NCBI RefSeq assembly: GCF_964204645.1
Contig: NC_134031.1
Location: forward strand, 14,991,807-15,055,806
Origin: Tubulanus polymorphus
Taxonomy: Eukaryota; Animalia; Nemertea
DNA length: 64,000 bases
Reading direction: 5' to 3'
Every line of letters starts with the position of its first letter. Positions within the stretch are counted from its first letter, which is position 1. A program made the translations under genes and the position numbers. The notes under the pieces were generated by a model. That model had not been told where the DNA came from. It searched no databases and was given only the letters and a program-made list of their open reading frames with translations. Positions 51,353-63,996 of the stretch are shown in pieces.

Positions 51353-54300
51353 ATGAAGTCAAAAACGCCGACAGCGTGAGTGTAGAGACTGTCTATTACA
51401 AACAGTATTAATTAAATTGTTAATTGAACATCGTTGATTGATGAAGGGCGCGAAAACAGCGAGAGAATAGAGACATCTGTCGGCCTCTGTGTGATGTGAT
51501 ACGCTCCCTCCTCGCCCCTCCTTTTCCTCCCCCGCCGATCTAATCTCCCCGCCCTGTACGAGACTGGTTTTAAAAACTCCCTTCTGCTTAAGTTGTTACC
51601 TCGAATATCATAGATATATTTTGATATTGTGAACTGTGTGTCTCAGACATGTTCCCATTCAGGCTGCTCCCCTTTTTTTGGCTGAGCTATCTCTCTTGAG
51701 CCGGAGTCTGTTTGTCTGTTTAGGGTCAGTTCATAGTTCTGAATATTGTTAAGAATCCCCACTCTGCTATTTTTCAAGAACATTTCAAAGCGACCCAAGA
51801 TATTTCTCCAATTCTATTCATTTACAATAAAACTGCGATATAGCCTATTTGTGAAGGCAGTGGATATTTTGCCAATTCGGCATTATTCCTGTAAACGCAA
51901 TTTGGCCAATGGCGTGTTCTGATTGGCTAATTGACACCGCACAGGGGCATTGAGGTGGGCAACTTAGAAAATTTAAGGAAAGTGTCGAGAACAGAGTTAA
52001 AGAAAGAAAATAGGAGCATGGAGCGGGATTCGAACTCGGACCAGCAGATTGCTAGCCTAACGTACTGGGCTCACAGGTTTTCACTACGTAGCCTATACCC
52101 TGACCTTACCCTAATCTTAGCCCTAGGGGTAAAAACGGACCCTAAACCTCACCCTTACCTAATCCTAACCCTCGAAACCCTAACCCTAAACCATATAAAG
52201 TTTTAATGATTTTATTGCATTTGCAAAATATCCACTGCCATATTTGAACTGAGTGCGATGAACTTTTTCGTTGCGATAAATTCTGAGAATTAATGACCGT
52301 GAACTTGAATTTAAGATTTTTCAAATAAAAACTTCGTTATTCCCAATAATTTATCGCATTGCACGGCAAAATATTCCACAAATAAAGAAGAGTTCATATT
52401 TCGAAAATATTCCAGTTCGAATTTTTAAGAATATCACAAATATAAAGTTAATTAATTCTAAGAATTTTTCGTTACAAAAGAGTTTATTGCACAGCTTAAA
52501 TATATTGCAGTTTTATTGAAATCTTACCTTGAAATTATCTTGAAAAATTGTCGAATTGGGATTTTTTGCCTTCTCTGAAGATTTGGGGATTTTAACCTAC
52601 AACCATTTTTGCCTCTTTTGAAGAATTGGGGATTTTTACTGCTGATTCTTTACTACTAACCCATCTCTCTTCCTCCCTCAACCTCTTCCCCTCCAAAAAA
52701 GGAAACGCCTGGAAAAAATGTCCGATAAGATAGAAACAAATGTCTCATTACATATTTAGTTAATTTCACATCAAAATAACACCAGGGAACAAACTTGTTA
52801 ATAGTGTAAATTGCACACTAACCATAAAAAAAGAATTCATTGAGTGACCATGAGAATTATAGGCCTGGAATGTTGGCATAAATTGAATTTTCCTATTGAG
52901 AACAGTTGAACTCATTACATGATTCTTCAAATTCAAGATGTTACATTTATACTACAAATAATTAAATCAAAGAAGAGCCATTATTTGTTATCAAATGTTA
53001 GAATTGTTATCAAAATGTATCAGCAAGTTTGGTCTCTGGTGTTATTGTAATGTGAAATTAACTACATTACCAAGTTAGTAATGATAGACTGGGACATTTT
53101 TTCCGGAGACACTTTTTCCCTGGGACACTTTTTCCAGGAATATATTTTCCGGGACATTTTTACCATATACCCCTTACCCCTTTCTCCCTATGAAATTAAC
53201 GCGGTTGTTATATTTTAAGTTTGGGTGATATGAGCGTTGATGAATTTATGAATAATGGATTCGGTGGGACAGACTCTAGTGAAGATGACGACCAGTCCGA
53301 CGATGGACCACCACCGGCGGCGGCGGTATCTGTAACCGGGGCAAAAAAACGCAAAAATCAAAACGATATCCCAGATTCCAGTAGGAAAAAGAAAAAGAAG
53401 AACAAAGCAGCGGAAGAAGAGTAAGAATTTCCGTCTCCTCCAGGAAATTAGATAAAAAGATTTAGGCCTATTTCAGAATCAGATGTTTCATCGAAACCCC
53501 TTGAGATATTGAATAGATATTCATAGCCCAAATTGCCCCCCCTTGCTGTATTAAATTATTTAAGAAACAGAAACGATTCATGGCCTTGAAAATAATAAAT
53601 AGAAGCATTATAATAATAAGTAAGATAATTATTATAATTATTATCTGTTGAGATTATGTTTGTATCATAATATTTATATTCTCTAGACCCCTTAAATATT
53701 AAACAATGGAACTGATCAAAGAGTTTATTCAACAATAAACTCAGCTTGCACTGTCCGGACCCCCACTAGCTAGCCAGGGTGATTGTTTGCGCAAACTGTG
53801 TCTCTTCCCCTGTCTGTGCTGCACTAATCATCTACAGACTGTTACAAATAAAGTATAAAACAATCATAACTCATTGATTTAATGAATAGGGCGGATTATT
53901 AGACTGATCTGAACGCTTGGATTATATGTTAATTTAGAAGTTAGTGTCAGCCGCAGGGGGGCACTAGACTATGTAAGTAAAAGTATACAGTCAGACAGAC
54001 ACACTGGGAGAGGGCGGTGTGAATCTTATTGGTCGGATATTTCTATATTTGGTGCCGCATTGCCGGATTGAGATACAGTTTCACCGCACATGTTGTTTGT
54101 GTATGTTGTAGCGATGCTCTGCCGTCCGTTTCGGGACACAAAGCTCAACTTGAACGCCTCAAAGATAAAGATCCGGAATTTTATCAGTTTCTACAAACTC
54201 AAAACAAGGATCTGTTGAAATTCGGCGAGTCTGACGACGATGACAGCGGCGGCAGTGATGTCGACGATAAGGGGAATGATGAAGGGATCGATGATAGTAC

Positions 54301-57300
54301 CAGTAGCGAAGATGAAAGTGAAGAGGAAGGATACAGACCTCCCGATAAACTTGAAGTAAGTTTGATAGAGAGAATCCCGCATTAATACGAGAAAGTTGAC
54401 ATACAAAAGTTTCCTTTTAGCTGATAATTTATTTATTAATTCGAAATTTCGATCAAAACCTAATTTAGTGGAGCCTCGTTACAACGAACTCAAAATGGAT
54501 ATTACAAATATAGAATTTTGTCCCAAGTAAGATAATTTGATTAATTTCATACTGGATATAACAAACTATCGGTCATAACGAACATATTTCCTGGTCCCGT
54601 GAATTTCGCTGTAACAAGGTTCCGCTGTCAATTTCAGGAATACTAATTTTAACAAAATTATGAATTAATTGTTATGACACGCACATAGTGTTTCATCAAT
54701 GGTTATTCAAGTATGTAATTTTTAAAAGTTTGGCCCAGTTCAGTTACGCAGTTCAACACTGATCATAAATTTTGATTCTGATTTCTGAAGCTGCGAATGG
54801 TATTAGACTGAGAGTTCTTCATTAAAAACTCTCTGAAAGAGTAAATTGAAAATTAGAATTATCTTCAATCTAAAAATTTGGTTTTCCCTTTTCAATGACT
54901 CGAATTCTTAATACTTCTATGTTTAACTGTTGCACAGGTTGCTAGCGACAGCGAGGGTAGCACTACAGATGAGGACGAAGGAGCGGACTCGGAACAAAAA
55001 CGCAAGAAAAAGAAATCCGGCGGTAAAACGTTGATCACGCTGAAAATGTTGAAAGAATGGACAAAAAATCTGCGGGTAAGAAAAAAAAGATATCCTTGTA
55101 TATATATCTACATCATTGATTTTTTTACTGAGTTGCTCGCGTGTAGTGCTGAAAAACGGCTTTTGCGGCCCGTAACGGGGCGCCGCCTACATTGTTTTTC
55201 TTATGCAAATGAATAGATGATGAGCATCTTGACTCGTCTTGGAACTAGCGGTGTGTTAACTGTAAATCATCGGATGAGGTTGTTTAATTCTCCGAGTGAA
55301 ATTTCAATGTTAAAACTGCTGAAAAACGATCTGAAAAATCAGAATTTTCTGGGGGAGGACCCCCAGACCCCCTTTTATTCTGGCAGCTGACGCTGCCAGT
55401 AACTTCACGCCTACGGCATTCGTTATTTCTAAGTTAATATGAGATTTAAAATTTTCCGCCTTTTTAATGATGCCCTGTTATCATCCCTGTAAATTTTAGA
55501 TGAAAAATTGTTGCAATTTTTTTTTGTAGGAGCAAAAAACGATTGCTTCGATTCATAATTTAGTTCAAGCGTTAAAAGCAGCCGTTCAGAGTATCGCGGC
55601 TAAAAGTGAGGAGGACGTAGAGGAGGCGCCTATTAACTTTAAAGTAGAGGGCAGCACAGGTAAGGAATTTTGAATTTAGTATCTCGGGTGTCTTGATGAG
55701 TCTGATACATCAGAAACTGCCGTTTAGATATTCAAATGGCTGTTGAATTGATGGATCACTCGGAAGTAAAGATATTGTAACCTTTAACTTGGAAAAGTCA
55801 AAGAATTAGAAAAATCTAGAAAAATTTCAGGAAAAACGCTTTCAACAACAATTCTTACCAAAAAACCTGGAAAATACTATGCTATCGGGCGCTTGTTTCC
55901 TTATCAGCAAGTGATTCACTGAAAAATGAATAGATTGTAACATTTTAAACCTAGAAATTGTGATTCATTCACTCAGGGAATTTGTGTAAACATGGAAAAA
56001 ATTAGGGAAAACTCTTGAGCCAATTCCGTAGTCAAGACTTACTCCAAAAGTGGTCTTATTGACTATATAAAGATGGTCTTAAACCGGTCTTTTCTGTTAA
56101 CCATGACTATGGAACTGGCCCCAGGGGATTTGTAGATGGGCTGAAAGTGGCTACCCTGAAGAAGTAAGCATAATCCAGAACTAATTGAGGGAGACTAATT
56201 AAGAATGTGATACAAACTAGGTGTAATATACAATATTAAACTAGGGGTAATTAGATGATACAATAATGCGACTGACTTGTATTTATATTTACAGTATTCA
56301 ACGCTATTGTAAGGTTGTGTATGACCGATATGATTCCGACGTTGAACGCCGCGTTGAACGTAAAACAACCGACCGTCCAGAATCGAAACTTCGTTCCGTC
56401 GAATTCATCGCGCTGGAAGAAACTCCGGATCGACGTCCGAGGGTATATTACGGCTATCATCAAGGTATTAACCCCTTCAGTGCTGACTAATCAATACCCA
56501 ATAGTGCTGGAGATGATTTGAACATTTTGAAAAATTCCACCCTAGTGTGTTGAATAACAGGAATACCACAATATTGCGTCTACACCGTGGTGCGGTGTAT
56601 GGTTAGTTACTAATATTTCACTATGTTTGACAGGTGCTGCCATCTTTAATAGAGATAAAGACTAATTACATCAATACAATGCATTGCGGTGTACAAGCAA
56701 AATTCATCACTGATTTATACACTGCACTGCGGTGTAGATGCATTGAAAGGGATAAATCTCGTTACAGAAAACATTTGCTGCTACTGTTTGTGATTCTGCA
56801 GTTCATTGATTAGTTTTACTGTGTTGGAGTGACGACAATGTCAAATACCAAATACTAGAATTTATACATGCCTGATTCTGCTGTCAAATTATACTTGATA
56901 ACTGAAATATGAAAATTAGTTCACTTTCAAATGTCAAAACGGAGAACGGCAGGACCGGATCGTGAACTGTTAATAATGAGGATTGTGAGATATTATTATT
57001 ATGATCATTATATAAAACTTATACAGCGCCTTATTCCAATGATCATGCTCTACGGTGTTTTACAGAAAGTAAAAGCAGTACAATTGAGATACAATATATA
57101 GCACATGATATAGTGCAGTGCAGCATCAGTAAAAGACTACAGCAATTAGGTTGTTTGTCTAAAAAGGTGATGATCAGTCGACTGTAAGATTGTATTGTAT
57201 TTCCAGTTATTATCCGATGTCGCCGAGGTGTCGATCGTTAATGTCGTATTACGACATGTTTATCAGTTGATTCCGTACGTTGCTTGTTTTCCGAAAAGTT

Positions 57301-60300
57301 CCAAATCCATGTTAAAGGTGAGCGAATGACGAAACTCGAGAAGTAAATTACGATTTAATTTCGACGTTGATTTGAAATTGTTATATTTCTATATTTTCTC
57401 ACAGCATTTGATTACGACGTGGAGTACCGCTGATGAGACCAGCCGTGTTTTAGCTTTTCTCTGTTTAATGCGATTAGCTCGGACACAGGCAGCCGATAAT
57501 CTGACGAATTTCATGAAAGTAAGTTCACTATAGCAAGTTTTAAGTTAATCTTCTAGATTAGATGGGAAAGAACAGGGCCTGTTCCGTGCTAATAATTATT
57601 GGTATGAAAATCAGGGGCTGGTTGCTGGAGTTAACCAGTCGTGGATAATGACAGTTAAAAGTTCATCGTTACTTTGGTACCAGGCTATTTATCTGTAACC
57701 CTGTTATCTGTAAAATAAATAATGTGAAAATCGGGCCCCATTTCAAAGTTGTGGGTTAAATTTGACTATTCCGCTATTCGAAAATTCAAGATATTGAAAA
57801 ATAGGACTGATTTAACTGAGGTACTGTGATTGAAACTGGGTGCCGAATTTAGAATTATCCAGAGTTGCTGTTAAAAGCAGGCTGAATTTTGATCGTAATT
57901 AAGGGGGAACTGTTGTCAAAAAATTATAATTGGCCATTCATTCTATTCTTGTTGTTGTTTAGCATAACACTAGTTGAAATTTCCAATTCTCCCTGATTAA
58001 CTTGTATACAACGATTTTGATACTGTTATCAGCAGAATTTACGGCAGATGAGAGCCGCCATATTTAATTGAATTCCAAAGTGAGGCATGTAAACATTGAT
58101 GACGTATCCTGGCCCATCACACACAAATAGATACACTCATTGAAGATCTCAGTTGAAAAATTGCGATTAAAATACTCCTGCTGAGCTGCCAGCGGGGTCT
58201 TTACTTTTATTTATCCACTTACTGTGTGAAACATATCCAAATAATTGCATAATAATTGCAAATAATTGTGTGGCATATTGCTGCAGTTTAGAACTGTTAT
58301 TGGACTGTGATGAAAACACAATGAATAGCAGCAGTAACATGTATCGAAGTGGGCCGAACTACGTCACAGCTGAGAGAAAAGGTGTCTGCTACGTGGAGAA
58401 AATGGCGACGGCCAGGCACTCTCTACGAAACCCACTTTTTTGGATAAAGTATTAGATGAAATGTTTTCTGCTGTTTTGAAAATGTATTTATAAAGGTTTC
58501 TAACACATAGATACAAACAATTTTTCACTGCAGTTCCCCTTTAACATGTGAATATCTTCTCGTTTCAGCAAATGTATATGTCATTCGTAAAGAATTGTAA
58601 ATTCACTTCACCTACGTCACTACCGCAGATCAACTTCATGCAACGATCTCTCGTTGAAGTATTTTCATTGGATATCGATTCGGCCTATCAACTGGCGTTC
58701 GTGTATATCAGGCAATTAGCTATACACCTACGTAACGCTATCAACACTAAGAAAAAGGTCAGTGTGAACAATAGTCGAGTTTTTTAAGAGTTTAAAAAAA
58801 TTTTTGACCCCGGCCCTGTTCCACAGTCATGAGTTAACTAATGTACAACTGTGGAACTGGATACCTGAGTCCAATGTTTAAATCTAGAGTGAGTCAAATA
58901 TGAACGGAGAATGATTGTGAAAATTTTTCATTGAGCTAGCGATAGCTGTTATTTCAATGAATTAGTCATCCTCTCTGATTGAACCTATTTTCGTGCTGGA
59001 TGCTTGAGTGACTCAGTTTGCTAAGAATCCTTGTCATTTTTCCATCGAGCCGTTTGTCTATATAATGAAGCTGGACGGAAGATTGATAAGGGCTTTTGGT
59101 CGGCAACTACTTCACCTCTCCGCGCGGTGACCTTGTAAAAACGATGTCGGTTGTGTTTTGTATCCTTGTCACTTTTTCGTCGTGTTCTAAATTCATGAAA
59201 CGACAGGACGGAAGACTGATAAGGGTTCAATCTCAATACTATTCACCGATTGGTTGATATTGATTTGAAATGTTCAACGTTTTTACCCTTATGACTTTTT
59301 CATCCCGCGTGTTGAATTCAAAAGCTGGACGGAAAACTGATAAGGGCAGAAAATGAACTAACTTCTACCACCCTTCCTGGCTTTTGCCGAGTTTAACAGA
59401 AATCTGAAATCTGACATCCGTTCTAGTCCTTAAATACTCTAATAAACACTCTAAGATTGGTGCAACTGATTCCTTTGTCATAGAACAAAGTTAGGCTGGT
59501 GTTGTCTTGATTGAAATGTGAAGCTCAGCTCTAGGTACTGGGGTTAAGAGAGCTGTCTATGATCAATCCTTATCAACTTCTCGTCGAGTTTGAAATCGTT
59601 ACTGGACGGAAGTCTGATAAGGTCTGATTGTATCGACTCGACCAGCAGACGGACGTGGCTGCAGTGGCTCCCTCTTTACCGACAGATGGACATGGCTGCA
59701 GTGGCTCCCTCTATACCGACAGATGGACATGGCTGCAGTGGCTCCATCTATACCAACAGACAGACTGCAGTGACTGTATCCATAAGAAGATGGACATGGC
59801 TCCCTCTATACTGACAAACAGACATGGCTGTAGTGGATCCATCTTCACTGACGACACAGAATTGGCACAATCTACCGCTGTAAACGGATACTAAATGCTA
59901 TGAACCCTTGTCAACTTCACGTCGAGTTTGAAATCAATACTGGACGGAAGTTTGATAAGGGCTTGTGGTTGTAACTGGCAACAGGAACTGTAAACATTGT
60001 TGAATGTGATGGATTTCTGGTCCTTGTCACTTTTTCGTCGAGTTTAAGAAAAGAAAAAACGACTGGACGGAAAACTGATAAGGGCTGGAGTTCATTTACC
60101 CGACAGAGATGAGAGAGGCCCCCCATTTCGTTCAATCTAGAGATCTTTCTTCTGACAAGTTTCTTCTATATGAACCCAAAGCTTGCCAAGTTTTGACTGT
60201 TTGAGGCTGTAGATTGATAATGAAATCTGTGATGTTTTAATGTTGTGTTTTGTTGTTGTAGGAATCGATTCAAGCTGTTTATAACTGGCAGTTTATTCAT

Positions 60301-63300
60301 TGTATAAATTTCTGGACGAGATTCCTGACGACGTTACACCCGAACGACACGTTAGATCCACTCATCTATCCACTTACACAGACGATCATTGGAACGATCA
60401 AGTAAGTGTCCTACACCCTGTGCTACTTGTGGCATTCGAGGATTCCACATGTTGCAGGCGAGGGTCCACCTAGTGTCGCCAGTCGATTGTCAGTCGTCCG
60501 TGTTCGATTTCTTCTACTATTCAATTAAATCCTGATGGACTTTTCTGCATGAATCGATCATTTATGAAAACTATACTGATATCTTAGTTAGAAAAAGGAA
60601 AGCGTCGTATATTTGTTGGGTACTGTGATTATATATGGATTCGGGAGTCAAAAAATTCAGTTCATTGAAATTTGATAACGTAAGACTTATTGCTTGTCAC
60701 ACCATCTACTGGTTTTGCGGGTACCCCACTTATTATACCGATATCTGAGTGAAAAAAAATTTGTTTTTTTCTGTGGTTGCTGTGATAATATATGGATATG
60801 ATTTATGGACCTATTGTTATCATCTGGTGGGAGAGACCCCGGAGTTGCGAGTTCCCCATCGGTTTTGATTGAGCTTTAATTGCTTGTAATGGCAGCGAAT
60901 ATTACAAGAACTAAAAACTGTCATCTGAAGTCGGAGATCTGACGGTGGTTATTATGGTCCCTTATCAACTTCTCGTCGAGTGTGATTGATTGAAGTAACT
61001 GGACGGAAGTTTGATAAGGGCTCACAATAATCCTAAACACAACTTGCCTGCATAAACCTCTCGTCTGCTAATAACGCCAGAATCTCGATGTATTAACTTC
61101 GGCAGCCAATGAAGTTACCCCCAATCAGTCACCAGCTGTTTCAGAGTGGTTGAGAAATTGTTTGAATGAACCGGAACAAAATTTCCCAATTATGTACTTT
61201 GATTTAAACAAAAAATGCTGTAATTTCGACTGCCGATCACAAAGCTATATCTGTACTTCAATTTCCAATTTCAAAATCAAACTCCTTGTTTTGCTCCCGG
61301 CAGGTGTGGTGGGTTTGTGAGGGACACCGAATCAAAAATCAAGCGAAGTCTACCAATTGAATAGATAACAGGGTCAATCCCTATTTCAAGATCCAAATAA
61401 AAAATGAAAAAATAAGAACATTGTGTTTTATAGGTTGGTGCCCGCTGCTAAATACTACCCGCTGAGATTTCATTGCATCCGAACTTTAAACACAATATCG
61501 GATAAGACGAGATTCTACATCCCGGTCCTGCCGCATATACTAGAGGTACGTACTACTCCTGAGTCGACCTCCACCAGGTGGTGCCAGTAGGACTCGTTAA
61601 TTAAATTTGATGATTATTTTACAGGTTTTTGAATTGAGCGATTTCAACAAGAAGCACACTAAAGCCAGTTTGAAAACGTTTAACTTCGACTGCGTGCTGA
61701 AACTGTCCAAAACTCAACTACAAGAAAAAAAATTCAAAGTAAGTTGAAAAAAAAATCAGGGGCTGCAGTTGCTCGAAAGTTGGTTAGAGTAAACCAGTGG
61801 ATAGTTTATTCGCATTTATCCGCCGGTTATCTTAAACCAACTTTTCAGCAACTGAACCCGGCTATTTCTGTTTGTTATTCTATAAGCTGAAATCAACCGG
61901 TAGAAGTTGTGGGGAAGATCTGTAATTGTGTAATCTGTATTTGTAGGATTGTGTGATCGAACAAGTTTACGATTTATTGATGGAGCATTTTAACCTACAT
62001 TCACACAGTATCGGTTTCCCTGAATTAGTGTTTCCCGCAGTCTTGCAGGTAAGCCATTAAATAGTGAAATCCAGTCTCCGCTGATTGCTGATTGAAGATT
62101 TTTATGGACTCTCTCGACTTTCACTTGACAATTTTCGTAATGTGGTAATGATGGTAATGATTGAAATTTATATAGCGCAGGTATCCTGACCTTAGTGAGT
62201 TCAGATGCGCTCCAAATTTGGTGTTATCACCCCCAGCCTCATCATACATTTCATGTATCAATCATGGAGAGAGGCAATGAGGATACATATCTTACCCGGG
62301 ATTCGAACCCATGACCTGGCTTCTCACAGTCGAACATTCTAAAACATGTCAATGTCATTGTTACAAAAACCAATACAACTCCACATAGTTGTTCATTATT
62401 ATCTCCTTGCTTAACCCTTTCAGTGCGTCTACACCGCATCACCGCAGTGCGGTGTATGAATCGATGATGGATTTTGCTAGTACACCGCATTGCAGTGTAT
62501 TGATGTAATTAGTTTTTATCTCTATTGAAAGATGGCAGCACCTGTCAAACATAGTGAAATATGAGTAACTAACGATACACTGCGTCGCGGTGTAGACGCA
62601 ATATAGCGGTATTCCCATTATTCAACACACTAGGGTGGAATTTTTCAAATTATCTCCAGCGCTATAGGGTAGTCAGCACTGAAAGGGTTTAGTACCTTTG
62701 TGTAAATTTAAGAGAATACGTCTTAAGAATTTGGTTTGTCGAAATTGTTTTTCAGTTGAAGACGTTCATCAAACAATGCAAAGTCGCTAGTTTTACGAAG
62801 CAGATCAAACAGATCGTCGACAAGGTGCAAGAATCGAGCAAAACGATTCAGCAACGCCGAAAATCCAGTTCGATCGACATCACCGACTCGTCTGCGGTCG
62901 ACAATTGGGAAATCGCGATGAAACAGGAGGGAACGCCGCTCGGTAAATTCTATTCCAGTTGGCGTAAATTGAGAGATCGAGAAAAACAGATGGAAGCAGC
63001 CGGAAAAGACCAGGTAAAACTCGTAATTTACTCGAGCTGGGGATTGATGAGAGGTTTAAAACCAGACTTCTATCATACAGTAGACTGTGTTTACCCCCCT
63101 GAGTCGATTGCCCATCGACAATAAGTTATAAATTTTCCAACTCCTCCAAGATGGCGCAACAAAACGCTGGGTTATATGTTGTGAGCATCAGTTAATTTTC
63201 AATTAAATTTGAACTTGACTTTTAGGCCGCCAAATCTGAAAATTATCTGTACTGTAGATCTGAGGCAACCTCCACAGTCTATTGTAGATCAGAGGCCACA

Positions 63301-63996
63301 CTGTCTACTTTAGATCAGAGGCAACCTCCACAGTCTACTGTAGTTCAGAGGCAACTGCCACTGTCGACTGTAGATCAGAGGTAACCGCCACAGCCACAGT
63401 CTACTTACAAATATGGTGACACTGAATGTTTATGTATTTGAACAGATTGTAGGAAGCGATAATCTACCGGTGATTGTACGCCCGAATGGTCCGCTACGAG
63501 CGACGCCCGAAGAGAGGAAAGAATTCTCCGAGATTTTCGACGCATCAAGTGACGAGGACGGCGACGATGAAACTAGATTCTTACTGAAATCTGAACGACC
63601 CACAACTAAAAAACATAAAACACTCACCAATAGCGACAGTGACGGTGATGCTGACAGTTACAGGTATTCATTATTTGCACATTAATTGACCAAGGGACGT
63701 TTTGATGGTCAGAGCCGTCTGGTGGATCCACACTTGCCGCAGTTGTAATTTGTTTATTTTTTTTCAGTGATTTCGACGAAGGCGATTTGGATCAACTGGC
63801 TGGTTCAGCTAGTGAAGAGGAAGGTAGTAGTGGTGGTGAGGAGGAAGGAAGTGGTGATGAAGAGGAAGAACTTAGTGATAACGATGATGATGATGATGAA
63901 AGTGAAGATGAAATGTCCGATATTCCTGAAATGGAAGATGTAGTTGAAGATTTTCAATTCACAGATGATGATGATTCTTCGTGTTTGAAAAAATAA
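51353..63996 (+). CDS. NOC2L: Nucleolar complex protein 2 homolog
   Basis: Tentative first exon 51353-51375, then 53220-53420, 54112-54355, 54938-55075, 55530-55659, 56295-56464, 57207-57317, 57405-57518, 58569-58757, 60262-60401, 61434-61545, 61625-61738, 61947-62048, 62756-63013, 63446-63663, 63768-63996. Motifs [68 protein letters not shown]. Confidence 0.93.
54466..54627. mobile_element. pogo/Tigger-like MITE, second copy
   Basis: TAGTGGAGCCTCGTTACAACGAA ... TTCGCTGTAACAAGGTTCCGCTG; inverted relative of 12077-12229. Confidence 0.65.
56468..56755. mobile_element. piggyBac-type MITE, copy 5 (reverse orientation), at a NOC2L donor site
   Basis: TTAACCCCTTCAGTGC ... GCATTGAAAGGGATAA; the TTAA is intron positions +4 to +7. 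Confidence 0.83.
59029..59093 (+). ncRNA. mir-184: miR-184-family pre-miRNA 1 (3p UGGACGGAAGAUUGAUAAGGGC, 59072-59093)
   Basis: 5p arm CCTTGTCATTTTTCCATCGAGC pairs with the 3p arm leaving 2-nt 3' overhangs; seed GGACGGA identical to miR-184 (UGGACGGAGAACUGAUAAGGG). Confidence 0.85.
59164..59226 (+). ncRNA. mir-184: miR-184-family pre-miRNA 2 (3p AGGACGGAAGACUGAUAAGGGU, 59205-59226)
   Basis: 5p arm CCTTGTCACTTTTTCGTCGTGT; compensatory U-A pair at mature position 1. Confidence 0.83.
59287..59347 (+). ncRNA. mir-184: miR-184-family pre-miRNA 3 (3p UGGACGGAAAACUGAUAAGGGC, 59326-59347)
   Basis: One mismatch (position 9) to canonical miR-184; 5p arm CCTTATGACTTTTTCATCCCGC. Confidence 0.85.
59568..59624 (+). 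ncRNA. mir-184: miR-184-family pre-miRNA 4 (3p UGGACGGAAGUCUGAUAAGGUC, 59603-59624)
   Basis: 5p arm CCTTATCAACTTCTCGTCGAGT; basal stem GATCA/TGATT. Confidence 0.85.
59640..59850 (+). repeat. ~37-bp minisatellite (GACAGATGGACATGGCTGCAGTGGCTCCCTCTATACC) between hairpins 4 and 5
   Basis: About 5 degenerate copies; source of ORFs 59590..59814 and 59628..59894. Confidence 0.85.
59906..59962 (+). ncRNA. mir-184: miR-184-family pre-miRNA 5 (3p UGGACGGAAGUUUGAUAAGGGC, 59941-59962)
   Basis: 5p arm CCTTGTCAACTTCACGTCGAGT; loop nearly identical to hairpin 4. Confidence 0.85.
60022..60085 (+). ncRNA. mir-184: miR-184-family pre-miRNA 6 (3p UGGACGGAAAACUGAUAAGGGC, 60064-60085)
   Basis: 5p arm CCTTGTCACTTTTTCGTCGAGT; extended basal stem ATGGATTTCTGGT/GCTGGAGTTCAT. 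Confidence 0.87.
60960..61021 (+). ncRNA. mir-184: miR-184-family pre-miRNA 7 (3p UGGACGGAAGUUUGAUAAGGGC, 61000-61021), in the next NOC2L intron
   Basis: 5p arm CCTTATCAACTTCTCGTCGAGT with apical UGUG at the stem/loop junction; basal stem GGTTATTATG/CACAATAATC. Confidence 0.87.
62411..62691. mobile_element. piggyBac-type MITE, copy 6
   Basis: TTAA|CCCTTTCAGTGC ... GCACTGAAAGGG|TTTA. Confidence 0.85.
63248..63405 (+). repeat. ~29-bp tandem repeat (TAGATCAGAGGCAACCTCCACAGTCTACTG)
   Basis: About 5 copies in a late NOC2L intron. Confidence 0.85.

Follow-up and report, generated by a model that had tools for sequence, protein, structure and literature searches.

A cluster of seven miR-184-family hairpins in two introns of NOC2L in the ribbon worm Tubulanus polymorphus

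The microRNA miR-184 (Rfam family RF00657) is present as one copy each in fly and human. A stretch of 64,000 nucleotides (nt) from the palaeonemertean ribbon worm Tubulanus polymorphus (RefSeq assembly GCF_964204645.1, contig NC_134031.1, positions 14,991,807 to 15,055,806 of the forward strand; hereafter the window, in whose numbering positions are given unless another sequence is named) raises the question of how seven hairpins of this type come to lie in two introns of the nucleolar protein gene NOC2L, and whether that location has a meaning. An earlier reading of the same DNA, made from its letters alone (the original prediction), had proposed a seven-copy, dosage-amplified miR-184 locus whose output might be coupled, through its host, to growth or germline ribosome production. 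Our analysis points, with a probability that we put at about three in four, to a lineage-specific cluster of seven genuine miR-184-family genes, which would be canonical Drosha/Dicer substrates, on the sense strand in two neighbouring introns of NOC2L, a single-copy gene.

Hairpins and host gene

The window contains precisely seven matches to the pattern GGACGGANNNNTGATAAGG, all on the plus strand (Table 1); 0.12 would be expected, and none of 100 shuffled versions reaches seven. Every site lies in the 3p arm of a hairpin whose 22-nt 5p partner starts with CCTT(A/G)T. When the 22-nt arms are folded, pairing involves 17-20 of the 22 mature bases, the loops measure 13-21 nt and the energies range from -25 to -37 kcal/mol; with flanks included, the seven hairpins fold at -28 to -39 kcal/mol, with z values of -4.4 to -7.3 against dinucleotide shuffles, none of which equals them. 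They are also the most stable structures in a sliding fold scan of both introns. All exhibit an imperfect stem of about three helical turns, a basal stem that continues past the duplex and at least 10 nt in the terminal loop, and the 22/22-nt geometry of their arms would be compatible with 2-nt 3' overhangs.

The Rfam model for mir-184 matches all seven hairpins end to end on the plus strand (39.2-53.6 bits, E 1e-9 to 7e-6) and their antisense strand at only 23-32 bits. No other Rfam family has a match anywhere in the window, and none competes with mir-184 on the hairpins. Each copy carries the exact seed GGACGGA at 3p-arm positions 2-8, and the mature arms are identical to the canonical UGGACGGAGAACUGAUAAGGGC at about 18-20 of 22 positions. 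Pattern count, folds and Rfam matches agree, and, as judged from the sequence, the feature is real and its assignment to the family sound. The original prediction had therefore placed the seven sense-strand hairpins correctly, including the opening of their 5p arms, and each of them folds far better than its shuffled controls.

Table 1. Positions of the hairpins, their host introns and the canonical copies. Hairpin positions are those of the window; scores are for RF00657, z values are against dinucleotide shuffles, and CNNC gives the start of the motif downstream of the 3p arm (nt).
Feature	Position	Strand	5p arm	3p arm (mature sequence)	Start of GGACGGANNNNTGATAAGG	Bits (E)	z	Mature bases paired	CNNC	Remarks
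Hairpin 1	59017..59103	+	59029-59050	59072-59093 (UGGACGGAAGAUUGAUAAGGGC)	59073	46.5 (7.7e-8)	-4.9	18/22	+17	
Hairpin 2	59152..59236	+	59164-59185	59205-59226 (AGGACGGAAGACUGAUAAGGGU)	59206	39.2 (7.1e-6)	-4.8	20/22	+18	
Hairpin 3	59275..59357	+	59287-59308	59326-59347 (UGGACGGAAAACUGAUAAGGGC)	59327	53.5 (1e-9)	-4.4	17/22	+18	
Hairpin 4	59557..59634	+	59568-59589	59603-59624 (UGGACGGAAGUCUGAUAAGGUC)	59604	40.6 (3.1e-6)	-5.9	18/22		
Hairpin 5	59894..59972	+	59906-59927	59941-59962 (UGGACGGAAGUUUGAUAAGGGC)	59942	43.2 (6.1e-7)	-7.3			
Hairpin 6	60010..60095	+	60022-60043	60064-60085 (UGGACGGAAAACUGAUAAGGGC)	60065	53.6 (9.7e-10)	-6.6	20/22	+16	Mature sequence as in hairpin 3
Hairpin 7	60948..61031	+	60960-60981	61000-61021 (UGGACGGAAGUUUGAUAAGGGC)	61001	46.4 (8e-8)	-5.6			Next intron; mature sequence as in hairpin 5
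NOC2L	53218..63993	+								Nucleolar complex protein 2 homolog; about 15 exons, 830 amino acids; RefSeq XP_074653833.1 (Tubulanus polymorphus), mapped by tblastn
Intron with hairpins 1-6	58758..60261	+								1504 nt, after about codon 440; GT at 58758, AG at 60260-61
Intron with hairpin 7	60402..61433	+								1032 nt; GT at 60402, AG at 61432-33
Canonical miR-184 pair	C12:1911047-1912058	-		(UGGACGGAGAACUGAUAAGGGC)		67.2 (one copy)				930 nt apart (571-652 and 1501-1582 of the extracted stretch)

As for the host, splice sites, Pfam matches and the RefSeq protein agree that six hairpins lie in one intron of NOC2L and the seventh in the next, as originally proposed. NOC2L was searched exon by exon, and the RefSeq protein listed in Table 1 was used as its full-length sequence. 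The exons flanking the hairpin-bearing introns match successive positions of the Pfam Noc2 profile (7-71, 72-120 and 122-157) and residues 334-397 and 398-443 of human NOC2L (PDB 8fkv). Every Noc2 match in the 268-Mb genome falls at this locus, which makes the gene single-copy. Since the edges of the hairpins, all on the sense strand, are at least 166 nt from the nearest splice site, the hairpins are not mirtrons. Our literature search found no paper linking miR-184 with NOC2L, in keeping with the earlier statement that this gene was not known as a described host.

A census of the family in the whole genome yields nine hairpins, the seven in NOC2L and a pair of canonical copies on another contig, C12. 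The pair sits in DNA poor in open reading frames and presumably represents the ancestral miR-184 locus. The seven-copy miR-184 of the original prediction thus stands as seven hairpins of the miR-184 family; as copies of miR-184 itself it does not, since they carry five distinct isoforms and the canonical copies are those on C12. Among rejected candidates, a near-match pair on C7, the contig of the window, at C7:15132632 and C7:15132755, is GA-rich low-complexity DNA without a hairpin, and none of seven other one-mismatch matches in the genome folds into a miR-184-type hairpin.

Conservation among the copies

Comparison of the seven hairpins reveals which of their parts have been kept. In pairwise comparison the 3p arms have a mean identity of 0.89 and the 5p arms one of 0.77, as against 0.55 for the loops (0.44 when shuffled) and 0.51-0.55 for the 40-nt flanks (0.48-0.52 when shuffled), and direct repeats among the hairpins stop at the hairpin boundary. 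Since identity is high in the arms but close to the shuffled level in loops and flanks, and the repeats end with the hairpin, the copies are best seen as old duplicates that have retained only their duplex; that spacers and most loops are unrelated had been noted before. The consensus structure has 91% of its cells paired, compared with 83% in shuffles (none of 500 reaches 91%) and 36-51% when the partners are slid. Moreover, both sides have changed at 10 pairs, as against an expectation of 4.8; most of these pairs belong to the basal stem, beyond the mature duplex, and the basal stems are maintained by compensatory changes.

The flanks are not entirely random. Each of the nine family members in the genome, the seven NOC2L hairpins as well as both canonical copies, has a CNNC motif beginning 16-19 nt downstream of its 3p arm. 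Within the narrower interval of 16-18 nt it is found in seven of the nine members (five of the seven in NOC2L), against a background of 0.13 per 3-nt window (binomial P 1.7e-5), and it forms a single positional peak. This matches the established position of the CNNC motif that enhances cleavage by Microprocessor. The basal UG motif, looked for at -14 in the family hairpins, is not consistently present.

Variation among the nine mature arms of the genome is confined to positions 1, 9-12, 21 and 22, and all nine agree in the seed and at positions 13-20; by a simple calculation, the probability that seven variable sites miss positions 2-8 and 13-16 by chance is about 0.002. The seven hairpins encode five isoforms with the centres (positions 9-12) AGAU, AGAC, AAAC (twice), AGUC and AGUU (twice), the canonical centre being GAAC. 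They form two subgroups, 4+5+7 and 1+2+3+6. Hairpins 4 and 5, which are 88-89% identical, are the youngest duplicate pair, and since hairpin 7, in the second intron, groups with them, one duplication must have crossed an exon. In a second individual, for which hairpins 1-3 are covered, the mature arms are unchanged, and the sole change in these hairpins is a 1-nt deletion together with a C>T substitution at 59049-59050, the apical end of the 5p arm of hairpin 1. The pattern of variation offers a clear natural example of the positions of a microRNA that are protected by selection: the seed and positions 13-20 do not change, positions 9-12 vary freely, and CNNC persists in flanks that are otherwise random. 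Arm conservation, covariation, the CNNC motif and this pattern all speak for real microRNA genes, whose arms, basal stem and CNNC have been maintained by selection.

Relatives and hosts in other animals

The seven hairpins share with canonical miR-184 the seed, the position of the mature sequence in the 3p arm, the hairpin architecture and positions 13-20, but differ from it in being seven copies inside the introns of a protein-coding gene and in having centres other than GAAC. The original prediction had suspected that multi-copy miR-184 loci might already be annotated in invertebrates, and this is the case. Aphids have multi-copy miR-184 in the form of 184a/b, and haemocytes of the Pacific oyster have cgi-miR-184a, b and d, each with as many as four precursors; 184b ranks among the most abundant microRNAs (Zhou et al. 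2014, PMC3916443). In the same oyster, Xu et al. 2014 (PMC4138081) placed 67 mir-184 BLAST hits at two loci of about 4.5 kb, from which 14 mature types arise, the derived AAGUC/AAGUU centre among them, and put these hits aside; the units of these arrays repeat at about 128 nt (their Table S8). On an older assembly the two loci are at scaffold121:718110-722565 and scaffold43150:63164-67661.

The arrays of this oyster, Crassostrea (Magallana) gigas, are the closest parallel, being, like the Tubulanus cluster, spiralian and made of clustered miR-184-family hairpins with several mature isoforms. Their dominant product, UGGACGGAAGUCUGAUAAGGGA, is identical to hairpin 4 at positions 1-20, and their AAGUUU variant to hairpins 5 and 7 at positions 1-21 (PMC4138081). 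The derived A9-G10-U11 centre is therefore common to the oyster arrays and hairpins 4, 5 and 7, while hairpins 1, 2, 3 and 6 carry other centres with A9. Three of the spacings between Tubulanus hairpins, 121-133 nt, also resemble the oyster period. The two systems differ in that the oyster arrays consist of near-identical repeat units, flanks included, whereas Tubulanus has seven old copies with unrelated flanks.

A scan of metagenomes, in which contigs labelled human-gut (L026, L049, L057, L061) or primate (L065) were excluded from the comparisons, returned 19 canonical miR-184 hairpins and ten whose centre is AAAC, as in hairpins 3 and 6 (contigs L029, L059, L069, L096, L103, L105, L108, L112, L113 and L117). 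The latter, which come from other animals and are each single-copy on their contig, have the mature sequence UGGACGGAAAACUGAUAAGGG(U/C), and most score above the Rfam cut-off. As it is found both in oyster products and in these ten hairpins, A9-type miR-184 is, so far as sequence comparison can tell, widespread beyond this genome. The derived A9 type that is amplified in oysters is also present and amplified in a ribbon worm, which bears on the age of the paralogue; in the Pacific oyster, A9-type products rank with the most abundant microRNAs (PMC3916443, PMC4138081). The cluster also adds a well-supported, unannotated set of microRNAs to Nemertea, a phylum in which MirGeneDB 3.0 curates one species, Lineus longissimus.

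The association with NOC2L is not shared. In Lineus longissimus, the second ribbon worm for which RefSeq has the gene, NOC2L has the same three exons but introns of only about 215 and 163 nt, and GGACGGA is absent from both strands of its 11.7 kb, which give no Rfam match either. The miR-184 pattern was not found in the 52.8 kb of NOC2L of the eastern oyster (Crassostrea virginica), the species to which the host comparison refers, the arrays themselves being from C. gigas. Nor were the hairpins found in these introns in six further animals with identical NOC2L exon boundaries, and in Aplysia californica the gene is intronless, with one uninterrupted open frame of 2664 nt (GCA_000002075.2 KB941400.1). 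As the host is not conserved in Lineus or the oyster, a special link of the cluster with NOC2L and ribosomes, as originally put forward, is not indicated: a connection with ribosome production has no support beyond the location, and the idea of coupling to growth is likewise unsupported.

Known intronic clusters behave differently in this respect. The miR-106b~25 cluster in MCM7 is an intronic microRNA cluster in a growth-related host gene. Six mir-2 genes reside in oyster PPP4R1 (PMC4138081). The Tubulanus cluster resembles both in comprising several same-family sense hairpins in the introns of a housekeeping or proliferation gene, presumably cut from the pre-mRNA of the host, but the MCM7 and PPP4R1 links are conserved across species, whereas that with NOC2L is absent in Lineus, the eastern oyster and the six other animals. 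The cluster is a convincing but fairly ordinary lineage-specific case, and multi-copy miR-184 itself is not new.

The NOC2L genes that were compared have features of their own. In that of C. virginica, the exons adjacent to the region that bears the hairpins in Tubulanus are separated by an intron of some 44 kb, inside which a gene of 222 amino acids is called on the opposite strand. In one other animal, a tandem series of some eight degenerate copies, repeating roughly every 109 nt, lies in the intron that precedes NOC2L exon B, and the translated copies resemble exon B at 37-48% identity.

Transcription, rival explanations and possible targets

If the hairpins are genuine microRNA genes, Microprocessor would cut them co-transcriptionally out of the introns of the NOC2L primary transcript, and Dicer would then release 22-nt guides from the 3p arms. 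The 3p arm is the probable guide because it is the more strongly conserved and because the family offers precedent. With their common seed, the five isoforms would add to the miR-184 seed-target pool, possibly with an effect on dosage, and the differences between them may matter only at targets that pair with the centre or the 3' part. The cluster itself would go back to an A9-type miR-184 paralogue that was duplicated locally long ago.

Several points weigh against this reading. The sequencing runs that cover 58000-63400, three from one study, behave as genomic DNA, running through the introns without a break and showing no splice joints. None of the seven hairpins reaches the Rfam gathering score of 54.1 bits, two falling short by about 0.5 bit, and in this genome only a canonical copy on C12 passes it. 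The search pattern by itself imposes some of the constancy of the seed and positions 13-20, a bias mitigated by the fact that the Rfam model search, the one-mismatch search and the sliding fold scan yielded no diverged extra copies. Finally, the hairpins may have a separate promoter within the introns.

This last point is the core of the rival that we take most seriously although it is itself improbable, namely that these are real microRNA genes transcribed from one or more promoters of their own, independently of NOC2L, whose role as host would be incidental. It would fit the lack of conservation of the host, with no miR-184 in these introns in Lineus longissimus, C. virginica and the six other animals, and the oyster study cites the opinion that microRNAs located within genes are frequently not expressed together with the host (PMC4138081); on the other hand, all seven hairpins lie on the sense strand, in two introns, an arrangement that lends itself most simply to co-transcription. 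That the hairpins are instead pseudo-microRNAs, unexpressed copies of the canonical miR-184 genes in the course of decay, would be in keeping with the scores under the gathering threshold. We nonetheless regard this as very unlikely, since neutral decay would also have erased the arms, the basal stem and CNNC, and yet both arms, the basal-stem pairing and CNNC are kept in every copy despite randomized flanks and loops. It is scarcely credible that the hairpins are copies of a mobile element that merely resembles miR-184, of the kind of a miniature inverted-repeat transposable element. Repeated inverted-repeat units within introns are what such an element would leave, but the 268-Mb genome holds just nine copies at two loci, and similarity stops at the hairpin, with neither termini nor flanks in common. 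Scattering across the genome, which the original prediction had named as the sign of a transposon, is thus not seen.

A more far-reaching scenario than a lineage-specific cluster, and one that we consider unlikely, holds that an ancient spiralian A9 miR-184 paralogue has been repeatedly amplified into arrays, that its capture by NOC2L in Tubulanus ties its output to the transcription of ribosome biogenesis, and that the isoforms engage sites of extended pairing and a locus of nine sites on the same chromosome differently, as a microRNA/decoy circuit. The identity of a 20-nt core in oyster and ribbon worm and the A9 variants in contigs of other animals bear on its first element. As for the sites, two with extended pairing to miR-184 lie on the plus strand of C7:3772000-3774000, at 657 and 1013 of that stretch. 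They pair best with the isoforms that have A11-C12, that is, with the canonical one (-32.1 kcal/mol) and that of hairpins 3 and 6 (-31.0 kcal/mol), the others giving -26.7 to -29.2 kcal/mol, and by these modeled energies central variation could discriminate among 3'-paired targets. On the minus strand of C7:4287500-4295500, nine CCGTCC seed sites fall within about 830 nt, with none on the other strand; energy differences among the paralogues at these nine sites are small and inconsistent and indicate no clear preference.

The introns of NOC2L in Tubulanus also contain elements other than the hairpins. A tandem array of a 37-nt unit, with at least four registers at 77-95% identity, occupies 59628-59852, between hairpins 4 and 5. 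On the minus strand, 58788-58877 folds into a stable single-stem hairpin (-29.3 kcal/mol, z -4.1) without an Rfam match; it shows about double the word depth in the DNA runs, with a contig joint at 58812, and is probably a repeat element. In later introns, 61258-61438 and 62344-62705 have word depths of 10^4 to 10^5, compared with about 35 elsewhere, and many internal joints, and look like high-copy repeats.

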